Shown here: in pieces, positions 11,981 to 59,249 of the stretch | Layout: each line of letters opens with the position of its first letter | Numbering within the stretch: the first letter of the stretch is position 1 | Sequence record: LR745206.1 | Direction: 5' to 3' (one strand) | Length of the DNA: 64,000 nt | Translations under genes and position numbers: made by a program | Notes under the pieces: generated by a model | Told to the model about the DNA's origin: nothing | Seen by the model: the letters and a program-made list of their open reading frames with translations, nothing else | The model's database searches: none

Positions 11981-14900
11981 TTATCTAACTGCTGTATTTA
12001 TAGCCGGTGCTGTTTTCTTAACAATGACTTTGTTTCTATTTAAATTAAATTTAATAGTAAATATAAATGGTCTATTTTCTGCTTCATTTTCTAAGAAAAA
12101 TCTAACCTTTTTGATATGTTTAACAGTTTGATTTTGTCTGTTTAGATTTATATATTGATAATTTAAACCATCTTGATTATTATCCAATGCGTTCATTTTA
12201 AAGTAAATACTAAGTGGTATAATAGTTGAATTTCTATCACCAGCGCTTATAACCTTAACCTTGTCGCTATTTGTTTCTACAACAGATTCTAAATCTTTTA
12301 CAACTGGATGAATACTTGATAATAATTTTGTTGTTGATGCTACTGAAACAGTTGAATCAACCCATTTTGATGGATCCAATAAAGATTTATTGTTACCAAC
12401 AAATGATAGTATTGTAGTTTCATTATATCCAATATTATATTCTGTTGAGCTCAATATAGATGTAATTGAGTTGTTTGAATTTGGACCAAATGAATTTCCT
12501 ATGTTTTCAGAAACTTTAGCAACTGATGTATCATTTATGGAATCATAATTAACCATCCAAACAAATTGATTGTTTAATTGTGTTCTTGTTAATCCTGATA
12601 TATCTGATGTTAATAACTCATCTTGATCATTAACCCAGAATGTTTGAGGAGCTCCTGTATTATAAACATCATTATTTTGTAAATATGTTCTATTTGATAA
12701 AAGTCCAAGTGGTGATTCAGATGCTTTGTTCTTAATTTTTATAACAAAATCTTTAATAACATATATATCATTAGCATAAACTCTACCAGTTGGTATACCT
12801 TGACCACTAAATGAATTTAAATAATCTTCACACTCAACATTAAATACAGTCTCAGCTCCATTATTTATAACAAATTCTTGATTATTTCTAAGTATAATAA
12901 CTTCAAGTTCACCTTTAGCTCTTTTGATTTTTTCTTCAAGACCTCTTATTCTGTCTTCAAGACCTCTCATATATTCAAATAAATCAAGTGATACACCATT
13001 CTCATCTTTGAATCCAGATAATATCTTCGTTGAATCATGGTGATATGTTTTAGCATTAACAGTTACCGTATCTGATAAATGCTCATCCAAACCTTTAGCT
13101 GATAACTCATTATCCATACTCACCTTTAAATCTTCCTTAGTAGCTTCTTGTAGAATGAAATCATTTTCATTCAATACATTATTCAAATCATCAGGAAACT
13201 CAACAGTCATTATTTCAGACCAATCAGATTCAACTGGTGATTCTGGCCAACCAACTTCTGAGATTGATTTTATTCTCATCTCAACTCTTTCACCAGTTTG
13301 TATTGAAATATCAATTTGATTGATATTTGGTGTGTCAGCACTCTCTAAATCCTCTATTTGCCAATAGTATTCACCTGTTTGTGGATCAAATATTCTTTTT
13401 CTAGCATCTGTTTTGAATTCATTCCAATTTGAAAAACTAGCTTCTTTTTTAACACTTGTATTTAGAGCATCAAGTTTGAATGTCTCAATTGGGGTTTCTT
13501 TACCATCCTTACTCACATATCTATATTGGATACGGAATTGCACAATCTCTTGTGGTTTTGTACCTCTTGTAACAACAGCTTCTGGCATATCCCAAAATCC
13601 TCTTACTCTAAATTTAGGATCAACTTTTGTCTTTGGACTTCTTGATAAATCAATAATCTCTTTTGTGACAGAAGCTAATAATTTAGACTTACTAGTTTTC
13701 TTCTTTGTTAAATCATCAACTTCTAATTGTGATTGCTTCTTAGAAGATTCTGATTTAAATTTAGTAACCTTTAATTTCTTATTTCTATCTAAGATAGCAT
13801 CTTGTATTTGTTGAACTTCCGACTTTAAAGAAACTTGATAGTTATGCTTTTGTTTTATTAAATTGGAATCTGGTGTATCAGTTAAATGTTTATTAACTTG
13901 TACAACTTTGAAATTATCTAATATAAGTGTAGGTGATATCGGTGTACCAGCTAGTTTATTTGGTGTTTTTTTAGCAACTAAATCTTGTAAAACTTCACCA
14001 TAATCATAAACATAATCAATATAGAATTGTTCCATCGATAAACCATTAGATGGTGAATCAGAATCAAGTCTTAAATCATTTGTGTAAAATCCAGTACCTA
14101 AACTCCACTTTTTAGCAACCAAGTGATTTTCTGTATTTATTGGTTTTAAGAATATAATGTTTCTCTCATTATAACCAATACTAACTCTTACTTTTTTAGT
14201 GTATATAACTGGTGAGTATATTTTTAATGCACCAATAGCCACAGGTATTGGTTCTAGTCCTTCAATTCTTTCGAATCTAACTCTTGGATTTGATTCAACT
14301 GTTGAAACTTCTATAACTTTATATCTAGTTGATGTTTTATCACTATTTATGATAACCTCATCACCTATTGTTAGTGTTTTTACTTCTGTTGTTTCAACCA
14401 CAATATATTCTAATGTATCTAGTACATACCATAATTTTCTATTCAATCTATCCTCTTGTATTCTTAATACTGAGAATTGACCATCATATAATAAATTATT
14501 TGGTTCTAAATCAAATAATTGTTCGTCATATCTTGGATTTAATGGTTCAACTAATCCAGATGTTGTTTGGTGCCAATTTTCAAATTCAGAAAATACAATA
14601 TTAGAGTTACCTCTAAATAATGAATTAAAACTATTAAGAGCTGATTGACCTAGATTTGTTAGATTACCATCCACATCCTTTGCAAAATCAACAATATATC
14701 TTCTAGATAAACATTTCCTAACATCATTTTCTATCTTACCTGATAAATCAAGTTCGATTGATAATAATGGATCAAGTAAACTATCAAAAAACCAATTTGT
14801 GTTAGATTTAAAATTAGATATACTACCTAAACTATTAATAGCAACCGGTTCCCTATTTAAATCAACAGTTATTATTTTCTTAAATTTGTTTTGACTACTT

Positions 14901-32265: not shown

Positions 32266-32379
32266 ATTTTATAAATAAATTAAAATAAATTAGGTAGATA
32301 TAAAACTTTTATCTATATTTGTATAAAATAATAACAAAAACGAAAAAAGGGACAATTCCTTTTTAATATATAAGAAATA

Positions 32380-32475
32380 ATGACAACAAATAGTACACAT
32401 AAGAATTTTAGTAAATCGCATAAATGGTTTAGCAACCAATCGTTCGGTACTGAAAGTGTATTGTCATTAAATTAA
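32380..32475 (+). CDS. Putative attenuator leader peptide (His/Phe/Trp) MTTNSTHKNFSKSHKWFSNQSFGTESVLSLN
   Basis: 2 His, 3 Phe, 1 Trp; followed by a terminator and His/Phe/Trp tRNAs. Confidence 0.75.
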   Translation: MTTNSTHKNFSKSHKWFSNQSFGTESVLSLN

Positions 32476-32508
32476 TGTAGAAGTTAAATTAATAAACAAC
32501 AATATTTC

Positions 32509-32538
32509 AATCCGAACTCAAAAGTTCGGATTTTTTTT
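32509..32538 (+). terminator. Attenuator terminator, His/Phe/Trp tRNA block
   Basis: AATCCGAAC-TCAAAA-GTTCGGATT plus T-tract. Confidence 0.85.
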
Positions 32539-32552
32539 GTTTAAAAATATAT

Positions 32553-32627
32553 GGTGTGTGAAGGGAAAATGGTTGACCCGTCACTCTGTGAAAGTGAAGA
32601 TAGCGGGATCGTTACCCGTCATACACC
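32553..32627 (+). tRNA. tRNA-His (GTG)
   Basis: TCACT-CT-GTG-AA-AGTGA; encoded G-1 and C73; T-loop ATCGTTA. Confidence 0.85.
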
Positions 32628-32634
32628 CAAATAA

Positions 32635-32707
32635 GGAACCTAAGCTAATCAGGTGAAAGCACTGGACTGAAAATCCAGGGAGCCCGGATCGTTACCGGGA
32701 GGTTCCA
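32635..32707 (+). tRNA. tRNA-Phe (GAA)
   Basis: CTGGA-CT-GAA-AA-TCCAG; acceptor GGAACCT/AGGTTCC. Confidence 0.88.
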
Positions 32708-32714
32708 CAAACAT

Positions 32715-32788
32715 GGTGAATGTAGCTCAATTGGGAGAGCGTCTGGTTGTGAACCAGAAGGTAGTCGGATCAAAACCGACCTTTCACA
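32715..32788 (+). tRNA. tRNA-His (GTG), atypical
   Basis: TCTGG-TT-GTG-AA-CCAGA; T-loop ATCAAAA, A at position 73. Confidence 0.75.
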
Positions 32789-32794
32789 CAAAAT

Positions 32795-32866
32795 GGAGGC
32801 TTAGCTGAGACGGTTTAGCGTTGGTGTGAAGTACCAAAGAGGTCGGTTCGATTCCGGCAGTCTCCA
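32795..32866 (+). tRNA. tRNA-Phe (GAA)
   Basis: TTGGT-GT-GAA-GT-ACCAA; canonical T arm. Confidence 0.8.
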
Positions 32867-32881
32867 CAAAATAACTAACAC

Positions 32882-32953
32882 GCGGATGAGCGTAGGTTTA
32901 GTCGGCAGGATTCCAACCCCTCGCCCGTTAGAGTTCGAATCTCTACATCCGCG
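32882..32953 (+). tRNA. Degenerate tRNA-like gene (CCA/Trp or TCC/Gly register)
   Basis: Perfect acceptor GCGGATG/CATCCGC and T arm TAGAG-TTCGAAT-CTCTA; D and anticodon stems poorly paired. Confidence 0.45.
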
Positions 32954-32959
32954 CAAATA

Positions 32960-33027
32960 ACAAGTAGTGACTAAGAGGGTTACTTCGATTTTAACGACAA
33001 ACAATACTCTCTTTATTTTTCTCTTGT
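32960..33027 (+). other. Hairpin element homologous to the flanks of the permuted tRNA-Cys
   Basis: Shares CAAG-TAGT...GAG...GTTACTTCGA.T...CGAC...AATAC..CTC with 59031-59158; ACAAG/CTTGT closing pair. Confidence 0.5.
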
Positions 33028-33032
33028 TAAAC

Positions 33033-33103
33033 ACGGGTATGGTGAAATGGTATCATTACGGTCTCCAAAACCGCAGTTCTGAGTTCGAATCTTGGTACCC
33101 GTG
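33033..33103 (+). tRNA. tRNA-Trp (CCA)
   Basis: ACGGT-CT-CCA-AA-ACCGC; G73. Confidence 0.88.
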
Positions 33104-33135
33104 CAAATTATTAAAAATTGAAAAAGGAAGAAATT

Positions 33136-33165
33136 ATGAAAACTAAATTAAAATATAAACGATAG
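33136..33165 (+). CDS. Putative leader peptide (Lys) MKTKLKYKR
   Basis: 4 AAA Lys codons in 9; same GAAGAAATTATGAAAACTA 5' context as the leader at 33630; followed by four tRNA-Lys. Confidence 0.7.
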   Translation: MKTKLKYKR

Positions 33166-33195
33166 GGTTAGTAACCAATTGAAAGTTACTAACCC
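33165..33195 (+). promoter_or_regulatory. 11-bp hairpin starting at the Lys leader stop codon
   Basis: GGGTTAGTAAC-CAATTGAAA-GTTACTAACCC; no long T-tract. Confidence 0.7.
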
Positions 33196-33208: not shown

Positions 33209-33281
33209 GCGTTCGTAGCTCAATTGGTAGAGCTTCCGGCTTTTAACCGGAAGGTTGTGGGTTCGATTCCCTCCGGGCGTA
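33209..33281 (+). tRNA. tRNA-Lys (TTT)
   Basis: TCCGG-CT-TTT-AA-CCGGA. Confidence 0.88.
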
Positions 33282-33292
33282 CTAGTAAATAT

Positions 33293-33378
33293 CCGTCCGT
33301 GGGTGAATGGCTGAAACCACCAGACTTTTAATCTGACGAGAGAGATCTCCATTGTAGGTTCGAATCCTACCGGGCGGA
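33293..33378 (+). tRNA. tRNA-Lys (TTT), long variable arm
   Basis: CCAGA-CT-TTT-AA-TCTGA; extended variable region. Confidence 0.75.
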
Positions 33379-33382
33379 CAAG

Positions 33383-33465
33383 GCACCTGTCGCTTAGCGG
33401 CTATAGCAACTGGCTTTTAACCAGTCGAGTTTTCTCAATCGTGGGTTCGAGTCCCACCAGGTGCA
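33383..33465 (+). tRNA. tRNA-Lys (TTT), long variable arm
   Basis: ACTGG-CT-TTT-AA-CCAGT; variable CGAGTTTTCTCAATC. Confidence 0.8.
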
Positions 33466-33471
33466 CAAAAT

Positions 33472-33557
33472 GACTCCGTTCCCGTAGTTGGCCGAACGGT
33501 CCAGACTCTTAATCTGGCGACGAAAGTCCACCGTGGGTTCGAATCCCACCGGGGTCA
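33472..33557 (+). tRNA. tRNA-Lys (CTT), long variable arm
   Basis: CCAGA-CT-CTT-AA-TCTGG; variable GAC-GAAA-GTC hairpin. Confidence 0.8.
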
Positions 33558-33629
33558 CAAGAATAAAAGTTAAAAAATTAGGAATTGACAAAAACAAACA
33601 TTACATTTGTAATATATAAAGAAGAAATT

Positions 33630-33704
33630 ATGAAAACTATTAACAACACATCGAAAAGTTCTAGTCGCTCATCAAGTATGAGTGAGATTCGATTGTATTC
33701 GTAA
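33630..33704 (+). CDS. Putative attenuator leader peptide (Ser/Arg) MKTINNTSKSSSRSSSMSEIRLYS
   Basis: 9 Ser + 2 Arg in 24 aa; own TACATTTG promoter; terminator then Arg/Ser tRNAs. Confidence 0.82.
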   Translation: MKTINNTSKSSSRSSSMSEIRLYS

Positions 33705-33726
33705 TAGTCAAGTATAGATATTTATG

Positions 33727-33757
33727 AAACCTCGAATCTAACGATTTGAGGTTTTTT
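33727..33757 (+). terminator. Attenuator terminator, Ser/Arg tRNA block
   Basis: AAACCTCGAATC-TAAC-GATTTGAGGTTT plus T-tract. Confidence 0.85.
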
Positions 33758-54824: not shown

Positions 54825-54869
54825 AAAGGGAGACAACCTTTTTAATATATACACGTATAATAAAGACAT

Positions 54870-54941
54870 CGCGGGGTAGAGCAGTGGCAGCTCGCAAGGC
54901 TCATAACCTTGAGGTCGTTGGTTCGAATCCAGCCCCCGCTA
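54870..54941 (+). tRNA. tRNA-fMet (CAT), initiator type
   Basis: CGCGGGG 5' end with unpaired C1, CAAGG-CT-CAT-AA-CCTTG; no leader or terminator upstream. Confidence 0.85.
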
Positions 54942-55028
54942 CTAAAAAATATTAAAATAAATTAGGTAGATTAGAAAAAACTACTTATATTTGTAAAAGA
55001 ATTAATAAACAAGATAATAAATAAACAA

Positions 55029-55115
55029 ATGAACACAATTACTAACATAGCGTCTTACGAATCTTATTATGAAGAGGGTAACCTAGTCAGACGAAATAAC
55101 TATGTCGTAATGTAA
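55029..55115 (+). CDS. Putative attenuator leader peptide (Tyr/Glu) MNTITNIASYESYYEEGNLVRRNNYVVM
   Basis: YESYYEE core (4 Tyr, 3 Glu in total); terminator then Tyr/Glu tRNAs. Confidence 0.82.
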   Translation: MNTITNIASYESYYEEGNLVRRNNYVVM

Positions 55116-55139
55116 GTAATTATATAAACGAATATTTAT

Positions 55140-55173
55140 ACCCAGTCTGACAAATGTTAGACTGGGTTTTTTT
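55140..55173 (+). terminator. Attenuator terminator, Tyr/Glu tRNA block
   Basis: ACCCAGTCTGAC-AAAT-GTTAGACTGGGT plus T-tract. Confidence 0.85.
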
Positions 55174-55523: not shown

Positions 55524-55647
55524 GGTGATGTAGAGCAATTGGTAGCTCATCTGCTAGTTAAATGATGGAATAATCATAATCCTGAAGCTATTATAAAATA
55601 GGCGACACGGTTGGTTCTTGGTGTAGGTTCGAGTCCTATCATCACTA
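55524..55647 (+). ncRNA. tRNA-like RNA with a large insertion replacing the anticodon arm
   Basis: Acceptor GGTGATG/CATCACT, D arm GAGC-AATTGGTA-GCTC, T arm GTAGG-TTCGAGT-CCTAT; about 70 nt insert with small hairpins. Confidence 0.6.
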
Positions 55648-55906: not shown

Positions 55907-56080
55907 CAAAAAGAAATAATATAATATATTTGGTTTATTTGGTTTATTGAAATATTATATTTATATTTGTAAAAGAATCGTAATCCCAAGTAACCCCTTG
56001 GTCGATTTTTTAACAAATTAAAAAAGATTAAAAGGGAAGGTAAAACTTTTTATATATACATACATATAATAGGAACGAAA

Positions 56081-56164
56081 ATGAAAAATTTAAATAACAT
56101 ATCAATAGCAGTAATCGGGAACGGCGCGGGAGCGATACGTGAGTGGCTGAGTTATGGTATTTAA
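56081..56164 (+). CDS. Putative attenuator leader peptide (Ile/Gly/Ala) MKNLNNISIAVIGNGAGAIREWLSYGI
   Basis: 5 Ile (3 ATA), 4 Gly, 3 Ala; terminator then Ile/Gly/Ala tRNAs, GlyRS and AlaRS. Confidence 0.82.
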   Translation: MKNLNNISIAVIGNGAGAIREWLSYGI

Positions 56165-56183
56165 TTAAATTAAAATATTTCAA

Positions 56184-56215
56184 AAACCCAGTCACGAAAA
56201 TGACTGGGTTTTTTT
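56184..56215 (+). terminator. Attenuator terminator, Ile/Gly/Ala block
   Basis: AAACCCAGTCA-CGAAAA-TGACTGGGTTT plus T-tract. Confidence 0.85.
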
Positions 56216-57929: not shown

Positions 57930-58804
57930 ATGAAAAGGCTGGACGCATTTTAGTCACAGAAGAATATAAATCTTACTGTGACGTTAATAAAATTAAATTT
58001 AAAGTAGAAGAAAGTGTTAAATCTTATGATGATACGACATTATTTTGTCCATCAGGGATGCAACAATTCAAATCTAATTTCAAGGACGAGAATTATAAAG
58101 GAACAATATCCAATATTCAATCTTGTTTGAGATTGAATGATATAGATGAAATAGGTGATGGAACACACCTACTATATTTTAATATGATTGGATTCTTCTC
58201 ATTTAGAGAGTGGACTGTTCCACAAACAATTGATTATTGGATGGAATTCCTTAACTTAATAGGAATTAAACCTGATTATGTTACAATACACCCAACTAAA
58301 CCAGAATGGAGTGAGTGGTATAAAAAATATGAAGTTGAAGTAAGGTTTGATGAAGAGTGTAAATGGACAGATGGTGATATTGGTGGATATTGTACCGAAT
58401 TTTATAAAGATGATATAGAAATAGGTAATATTGTTAATCCACTTGGTACCTGTATAGATGTCGGATTCGGCTTAGAAAGATTGAAAATGGTTTTAGACAA
58501 CCAAATAGTTAGTAAAGAAGATACTCTAAAAGAAAGTATTATGAAAATAATAGAGAGTGGATTCAGACCAGGAAATAATAAACAAGGATATATTTTAAGA
58601 AAACTTCTTAGATTATGTCACCAAAATAAAATAGAAATAGAACATCCGTTTTATATGGATGAAGTAAAAAGACAGGAGAAGATATTAGAGAAGTGGGGTA
58701 AGTTAAAAAATAAACACAATGATAAATCAAAGGAATGGTGGTGGGACACACATGGTATTGATTTAGATTTTATAAAAGAAATTGAAAAAAATGAAAATAT
58801 TTAA
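57930..58804 (+). CDS. alaS: Miniature alanyl-tRNA synthetase (N-terminal catalytic domain), start uncertain
   Basis: YDDTTLFCPSGMQQFK, QSCLR..D, H..YFNMIG, EIGNIV, IDVGFGLERL, GYILRKLLR; the conserved motif lies upstream of the track start 58058. Confidence 0.8.
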
Positions 58805-58957: not shown

Positions 58958-59030
58958 GCGAGAATAGCTCAGTTGGTAGAGCGCCACCTTGCCAAGGTGG
59001 AGGTCGCGGGTTCGAGCCCCGTTTCTCGCT
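58958..59030 (+). tRNA. tRNA-Gly (GCC)
   Basis: CCACC-TT-GCC-AA-GGTGG; canonical cloverleaf. Confidence 0.92.
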
Positions 59031-59045
59031 CAAGATAGTAGTAAT

Positions 59046-59157
59046 GAGAAGTGTTACTTCGACTGCAATTCGACTAGTCCAGGTTCGAATCCTGGCACCG
59101 GCTCAAATAAATAATGTCGGTGTGGTGTAATGGTAGCACAGTAATAACACACTTCTC
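59046..59157 (+). tRNA. Circularly permuted tRNA-Cys (GCA) gene candidate
   Basis: 3' half (59059-59103) precedes 5' half (59116-59141); acceptor GTCGGTG/CACCGGC, U73, flanks GAGAAGTGT/ACACTTCTC. Confidence 0.7.
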
Positions 59158-59175
59158 AAATTTTCTCTATCTAAT

Positions 59176-59249
59176 GGGGGATTAGCTCAGTTGGCTAGAG
59201 CGCCTGCCTTGCACGCAGGAGGCCATCGGTTCGAATCCGATATCCTCCA
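59176..59249 (+). tRNA. tRNA-Ala (TGC)
   Basis: CCTGC-CT-TGC-AC-GCAGG; G3.U70. Confidence 0.92.

Follow-up and report, generated by a model that had tools for sequence, protein, structure and literature searches.

A predicted leader-peptide attenuator ahead of the His, Phe and Trp tRNA genes of a huge phage

Huge phages carry arrays of tRNA genes, and the locus analysed here raises the question of how the supply of these tRNAs is controlled. In a 64,000-nucleotide stretch of the phage record LR745206.1 (the window, identical to record positions 310001-374000), a short coding sequence rich in His, Phe and Trp codons and a switchable terminator lie in front of tRNA genes for the same three amino acids. 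It was asked whether the leader is a ribosome-mediated transcription attenuator, so that these tRNAs are probably made only when ribosomes slow down at those codons. The record is an unannotated 634,780-bp "uncultured phage" genome, one of the huge phages of more than 634 kb placed in the Mahaphage clade and predicted to infect Bacteroidetes (Al-Shayeb et al. 2020, PMC7162821). The window is about 28% GC and carries at least 24 tRNA genes on the + strand. An alternative genetic code seems unlikely, since long ORFs read normally in table 11 and the leaders mostly end in TAA.

Anatomy of the leader

The leader ORF (32380-32475, + strand, as are the other features of the window described below) comprises 31 codons plus TAA and encodes MTTNSTHKNFSKSHKWFSNQSFGTESVLSLN, with H7, F10, H14, W16, F17 and F22. 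It is preceded by a sequence of the Bacteroidetes promoter type, TTAG-N20-TATATTTG (32290-32321), matching what is probably the TTTG/TAnnTTTG consensus of Bacteroides and Flavobacterium. Between this promoter and the start codon there is a conserved 5' UTR (32343-32379) with a weak A/U hairpin (AAAAAGG..CCTTTTT) followed by TAATATATAAGAAATA. The cassette is conserved in LR756502.1 (L001) and in the relatives handled here as L003, L007 and L180. An intrinsic terminator (32509-32538) follows the ORF, with a 10-bp stem and a 4-nt loop (32509-32532) and a T-run to 32538.

Downstream of the terminator, ARAGORN and Rfam call tRNA-His(GTG) (32554-32628), tRNA-Phe(GAA) (32635-32708), a second tRNA-His(GTG) (32716-32789), a second tRNA-Phe(GAA) (32795-32867) and tRNA-Trp(CCA) (33033-33104). 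A degenerate Trp-like element with CCA in its anticodon region (32882-32954) is called tRNA-Trp only at relaxed ARAGORN settings and is not called by Rfam at E<=1, while relatives carry two regular tRNA-Trp genes. Only about 15 nt separate the T-run from the first tRNA-His, leaving no room for a second promoter, and the terminator therefore sits inside the transcription unit.

The original prediction proposed that one leader integrates the three amino acids and that GTTCGG (32442-47) pairs with CCGAAC (32512-17) as an antiterminator, extended by TGAAA/TTTCA and TATTGT/ACAATA. These pairings are present in the window, with a duplex of -15.9 kcal/mol, and the general interpretation is supported, although function is inferred rather than measured. 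The anti-antiterminator helix was missed, however. The minimum-energy fold of 32380-32545 (z = -3.7) contains, besides the terminator, a long helix joining 32390-32421 to 32442-32464. This is the 1:2 helix of a classical attenuator. Segment 1 (32392-32421) overlaps the codons H7, F10 and H14, with W16 and F17 lying just 3' of it at 32425-32430. Segment 2 (32441-32465, core GTTCGG) pairs either with segment 1 or with segment 3 (32498-32518, core CCGAAC), which is at once the 3' strand of the antiterminator and the 5' arm of the terminator.

Folding of the nascent transcript up to the end of segment 3 (nt 139, the decision point), with a ribosome footprint imposed, indicates which codons could act as sensors. 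With the A site on H7, F10, H14, W16 or F17 the 2:3 core has P=1.00, whereas on F22 or E25 it is 0.00. F22, listed among the relevant codons in the original prediction, lies inside strand 2; it is Phe only where that strand reads GTTCGG, is absent from the AACTTGG clade, and is not a sensing codon. With a ribosome parked at the stop codon the GTTCGG core is still free (2:3 P=0.95 at nt 139), so the OFF state needs 1:2 re-pairing or steric exclusion, which could not be evaluated. At equilibrium the full-length leader folds into the terminator in every masked state (P about 0.95) and cannot by itself discriminate ON from OFF; the model thus depends on kinetic, co-transcriptional competition, as in trpL. 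For this leader alone the codon enrichment is modest (6 of 30 residues against 2.1 expected, P=0.018), and the evidence that it exceeds chance comes from relatives and sister units.

Conservation of the helices, the frame and the codons

An orthologous leader, MRTINKHKHFSKLNKWFSNHRFEAKAFC, was found in LR756502.1. Its terminator arms are TCGAAT/ATTCGA and its ORF contains ATTCGA, a compensatory change relative to the window. A first pattern search of viral contigs with AARTGGTTTAGYAACCA gave 44 hits, of which only 2 contigs were real and the rest were chance 17-mers. A metagenome scan with TTTAGTAAANNNNNNAARTGGTTTAG returned 113 loci, about 78 of which carry a 29-39-codon leader followed by His/Phe/Trp tRNAs, sometimes with Lys tRNAs as well. 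The element is widespread, occurring in about 80 loci from lake, marine and sludge metagenomes. In contrast, a scan of 185,579 representative cellular genomes for the His/Phe/Trp leader gave 20 chance hits and no leader, and thus no cellular counterpart of this leader and no clue to the host.

The alignment of 68 distinct homologues supports all three alternative helices by covariation. The terminator (3:4) is paired in 94.7% of cells, with 7 of 10 pairs changed on both sides. The 2:3 core is 99.0% paired, with 4 of 6 pairs compensatory (pair types GC35/AU30, UA43/CG24, CG43/UA24). Its TATTG:CAATA extension is 91.6% paired, with 1 of 4 pairs changed on both sides and the rest nearly invariant, while the TGAAA:TTTCA extension is only 40.7% paired, with 4 of 5 pairs changed on both sides but mostly unpaired outside the window's clade, and is clade-specific. 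The main 1:2 helix (alignment columns 27-42 / 66-79) is 91.2% paired, with 4 of 13 pairs changed on both sides, although part of strand 1 was fixed by the search pattern. As the homologues are phylogenetically related, these cell counts overstate the number of independent events. RNAalifold on the full alignment returned only the terminator and a small hairpin in the pattern-fixed region; it cannot show mutually exclusive helices, and pairs were therefore counted for each named structure. Without any alignment, 64 of 69 leaders hold an exact copy of at least 6 nt of their own terminator's 3' arm inside the ORF, and the cognate 2:3 duplexes average -16.7 kcal/mol, against -11.3 for non-cognate pairs and -7.8 for shuffled sequence.

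The frame is open for 29-40 codons in 69 of 69 homologues, both other frames carry stops, and indels are 3 or 6 nt. H7 is present in 67 of 69, and 56 of 69 leaders have exactly two His codons in residues 2-20, the second of which sits at position 9, 14 or 19 in different clades. H14 is specific to the window's subclade, whereas most relatives have H9. This pattern points to selection on codon content rather than on peptide sequence. Most of the homologues were retrieved with a pattern that fixes F10, S11, K12, K15, W16, F17 and S18; for this reason a second scan was anchored only on segment 2, and all nine real leaders recovered carry H7, F10, W16 and F17. Lys and Ser codons are equally conserved, partly because TTTAGTAAATCG forms helix 1:2, and in those clades where Lys tRNAs sit in the same block they may also be sensed.

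Recurrence of the design ahead of other tRNA blocks

The same genome has at least seven such units, and each leader lists the amino acids of the tRNAs behind it. Unit C (33578-33753) comprises a promoter, the leader MKTINNTSKSSSRSSSMSEIRLYS (33630-33704), an antiterminator (33684-33709 / 33716-33739) and a terminator (33728-33753), followed by tRNA-Arg(ACG), four Ser tRNAs and tRNA-Arg(TCG) to 34291. Unit D (54962-55167), with a promoter, the leader MNTITNIASYESYYEEGNLVRRNNYVVM (55029-55115) and a terminator (55140-55167), precedes Glu and Tyr tRNAs to 55907. Unit E (55938-56213), with a promoter, the leader MKNLNNISIAVIGNGAGAIREWLSYGI (56081-56164) and a terminator (56182-56213), precedes tRNA-Ile(TAT), Gly(TCC), Met(CAT) and Gly(TCC). 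The TT[TA]G-N20-TAnnTTTG arrangement precedes leaders C, D and E. The genome also holds units F and G at record positions about 387.7 kb and 406.7 kb; outside the window, an N/L/M/T/V/I/C/R leader precedes 19 tRNAs for those amino acids and a P/Q/D leader precedes the Pro, Asp and Gln tRNAs. All six terminator-type units have a 2:3 duplex of -15.5 to -21.4 kcal/mol.

Unit B (33136-33195) departs from this scheme. Its mini-leader MKTKLKYKR (33136-33165) is followed by four tRNA-Lys genes (33209-33558), but it has no promoter of its own, and its 11-bp hairpin lies at the stop codon and lacks a U-tract. The hairpin sequence differs completely between relatives while pairing is kept. Not every unit is therefore a canonical terminator switch.

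The design extends to relatives. LR756504.1 has a Q/Y leader before Tyr, Tyr and Gln tRNAs, and a KKKK leader with a 16-bp antiterminator before Lys tRNAs. A detector that picks the ORF by position only (a terminator at most 90 nt before a tRNA, and the longest ATG ORF ending just upstream) found 82 distinct leader peptides in about eight families, each listing the amino acids of its tRNA block, although ARAGORN misses some unusual tRNAs in the blocks. Where blocks are fused the leader is fused too, as in ...IEAIGYAYEAG..., which precedes Tyr, Glu, Ile, Gly and Ala tRNAs. For 11 representatives, the correct leader/block pairing was not reached by any of 200,000 shuffled pairings (summed z = 36.3 against 0.3 +/- 5.4).

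The match often extends to the codon. Ahead of tRNA-Arg(ACG/TCG) the Arg codons are mostly CGA/CGC/CGT, although CGC is 1 of 436 Arg codons in this phage's genes; it occurs 20 times in these leaders. Ahead of tRNA-Arg(TCT), 8 of 8 are AGA. Similarly, tRNA-Ile(GAT) goes with ATT in 11 of 11 cases and tRNA-Ile(TAT) with ATA in 8 of 11.

Proposed mechanism and comparison with known systems

The best explanation, to which a probability of about 0.85 is assigned, is ribosome-mediated transcription attenuation whose regulated product is a tRNA array. In this model, host RNA polymerase starts at the Bacteroidetes-type promoter and a ribosome translates the leader. If charged tRNA-His, tRNA-Phe and tRNA-Trp are plentiful, the ribosome runs through segment 2, segment 3 pairs with segment 4 and transcription stops about 15 nt before the first tRNA. 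If the ribosome stalls at H7, F10, H14, W16 or F17, it covers segment 1, and segment 2 is then free to pair with segment 3, so that the terminator cannot form and the tRNA genes are transcribed. With no ribosome, 1:2 plus 3:4 form and transcription terminates. A stall at any one of the three codon types should suffice (OR logic). Because the products are the tRNAs that relieve the stall, the unit would be a negative-feedback controller of decoding capacity. Translation of the leader, codon-dependent readthrough and the physiological trigger (codon-usage mismatch, host tRNA loss or cleavage during infection, or starvation) are inferred, without expression data for this uncultured phage.

It is probable, though less certain, that nearly the whole tRNA complement of the phage (more than 50 genes in at least seven blocks) is under such leaders, forming a phage-wide, codon-resolved feedback regulon that switches on each block only when decoding of its own codons falters. 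One possible trigger is host tRNA depletion or cleavage by anticodon nucleases, which would make the system a sensor-coupled counter-defence. Three main proposals exist for why phages carry tRNA genes: compensating codon usage, replacing host tRNAs degraded during infection and evading anticodon nucleases. A cis-acting sensor of this kind implies that the phage treats its tRNAs as an on-demand supply. The finding also extends classical attenuation to stable RNA genes and to viruses, shows that leaders can be re-programmed simply by editing codons as tRNA blocks are shuffled, and offers a compact, modular part for building codon-specific translation sensors.

Among the alternatives, the one that survives best, although it is considered unlikely, is that the same attenuator mainly reports amino-acid starvation or a general slowing of host translation, in which case tRNA output would follow host physiology rather than act as specific feedback or counter-defence. 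Leader-peptide attenuators such as those of the his and trp operons appear to respond to charged tRNA, which depends on both amino acid and tRNA, and nothing in the sequence separates the two inputs. In the his operon the response appears to include reduced tRNA gene dosage, which makes sensing of tRNA supply mechanistically plausible. Moreover, making more tRNA does not relieve amino-acid starvation, so that a codon-by-codon match to the tRNAs produced, including rare isoacceptor codons such as CGC ahead of tRNA-Arg(ACG) and ATA ahead of tRNA-Ile(UAU), would have no obvious benefit; it fits sensing of isoacceptor supply better.

An RNA-only switch, with an untranslated leader responding to a factor or directly to tRNA, is very doubtful. 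The helices covary independently of any coding argument, and part of the peptide conservation (F10-S13) is explained by helix 1:2. However, no T-box or other Rfam cis-regulatory family matches 32300-32540, even at E<=1, and such a switch does not predict the conservation of ATG, frame and stop in 69 of 69 homologues with 3-nt indels, the His codons that move position while their number is kept, or leaders unrelated in sequence that track the amino acids and codons of their own tRNA blocks. Still less likely is coincidence or insulation, with a terminator that only ends upstream transcription, a chance open frame and tRNAs made constitutively from another start. In 28% GC DNA a 31-codon open frame has roughly a 7% chance, and the enrichment in this leader alone is modest, but the promoter lies upstream of the ORF with no room for one after the terminator, the unit is conserved in about 80 metagenomic loci, and the antiterminator covariation and the pairing permutation test argue strongly against chance. 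Finally, a functional micropeptide placed incidentally before the tRNAs is the weakest alternative; residues 7-18 are well conserved, but the C-terminal half is conserved only as pairing partner of the terminator, and sister leaders share only M-[KRT]-T plus the amino acids of their own tRNAs.

The mechanism is thus a known one, whereas the output (tRNA arrays), the phage carrier and the genome-wide modular regulon appear new; no report of leader-peptide attenuation of tRNA genes was found in the literature that could be searched, which was incomplete, and if confirmed this would be the first case. Phage tRNA clusters (T4, T5, large myoviruses and the huge phages of PMC7162821) are likewise arrays thought to compensate codon usage or replace host tRNAs lost during infection, but they are described as expressed from temporal promoters. 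No cis-acting codon sensor was found for them in the literature that could be searched, and the paper that released this genome does not mention leaders or attenuation. T-box riboswitches also sense the state of a specific tRNA and gate a terminator/antiterminator ahead of translation-related genes, but they bind uncharged tRNA directly through a specifier codon and a conserved T-box sequence, without translation, whereas these leaders have all the marks of translated ORFs.

The leader-peptide attenuators of amino-acid biosynthesis operons (trpL, hisL, pheL, leuL and thrL; Rfam Trp_leader, His_leader, Phe_leader, Leu_leader and Thr_leader) share with this element a short translated ORF with codons for the sensed amino acid, four segments giving 1:2 / 2:3 / 3:4 alternative helices and an intrinsic terminator before the regulated genes. 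The spacing of about 12 nt from the last sensing codon to segment 2 also resembles trpL. Here, however, the output is a tRNA array instead of enzymes, the element is carried by a phage, the product feeds back directly on the sensed quantity, and the sensing codons are dispersed rather than in a tandem run as in trpL or hisL. There is no match to any Rfam leader family, at gathering score or at E<=1; the element works like them but is a separate family. The pheST attenuator of E. coli (pheM leader) is the nearest case of a translation component under such control, although it is a single-amino-acid, chromosomal element that regulates an aminoacyl-tRNA synthetase. In the multivalent attenuators (the ilvGMEDA and ilvBN leaders sensing Ile/Leu/Val, and the thr leader sensing Thr/Ile), one leader integrates several amino acids by mixing their codons, which is the logic originally predicted for His/Phe/Trp. 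In ilv and thr the amino acids share a pathway, while in the phage the set is defined by which tRNA genes lie downstream, and it changes when the tRNA block changes.

A conserved element upstream of the leader start codons

A conserved element, AAAAG..(loop)..CTTTTTAATATATA.., was found just upstream of leader start codons and also directly before the tRNA-Met gene at 54870, which has no leader. In the window, this element was located at 32343-32379, 54826-54860 and 56030-56080, while in L180, another sequence in which the promoter and leader arrangement is conserved, it was located at 13660-13699 and 32670-32702. The sequence TAATATATA occurs 12 times on the + strand and 10 times on the - strand, against about 5 expected per strand, and the element may be a phage-specific promoter or a translation-initiation element.

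Irregular tRNAs and tRNA-like sequences

Some members of the tRNA blocks depart from the regular tRNA form. Within the Glu/Tyr block, an Rfam tRNA match spans 124 nt (window 55524-55647; 40.9 bits), corresponding to a tRNA interrupted by an insertion or intron of about 50 nt. In the His/Phe/Trp block, a degenerate tRNA-like sequence with an irregular anticodon arm containing CCA (32882-32954) is followed by about 78 nt of unassigned spacer (32955-33032), whereas relatives have a regular second tRNA-Trp at this place. Furthermore, tRNA-like fragments with T-arm-like GGTTCGAATCC motifs (59036-59170) lie between tRNA-Gly(GCC) at 58958 and tRNA-Ala(TGC) at 59176. No leader of the usual kind was seen upstream of this pair, and the ORF ending at 58804 runs up to it.

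In the related huge phage L002 (1400-1940), a TAacTTTG promoter is followed by a structured non-coding stretch with no leader ORF, and then by several odd tRNA-like genes, one of them with a 2-nt anticodon call and one with a large insertion. ORFs that resemble aminoacyl-tRNA synthetases, as judged only by eye, sit next to the attenuator-controlled tRNA blocks in two related huge phages, being TrpRS-like in L001 (LR756502.1; 5424-6140) and LysRS-like in L002 (4215-5350).

The Lys mini-leader and the tRNA-Lys genes

The Lys mini-leader MKTKLKYKR* (window 33136-33195, including the hairpin) is followed directly by a stable hairpin without a U-tract, which is not a canonical terminator. About 30 relatives keep the peptide and the pairing, while the hairpin sequence is completely different.

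Three of the four tRNA-Lys genes (33293-33379, 33383-33466 and 33472-33558, with anticodons TTT, TTT and CTT), whose charging identity is unclear, are 84-87 nt long with a long variable arm, a class-II shape that is unusual for tRNA-Lys. This feature is conserved in relatives, including L001 (4825-5094) and the related sequence L003 (12590-12855).
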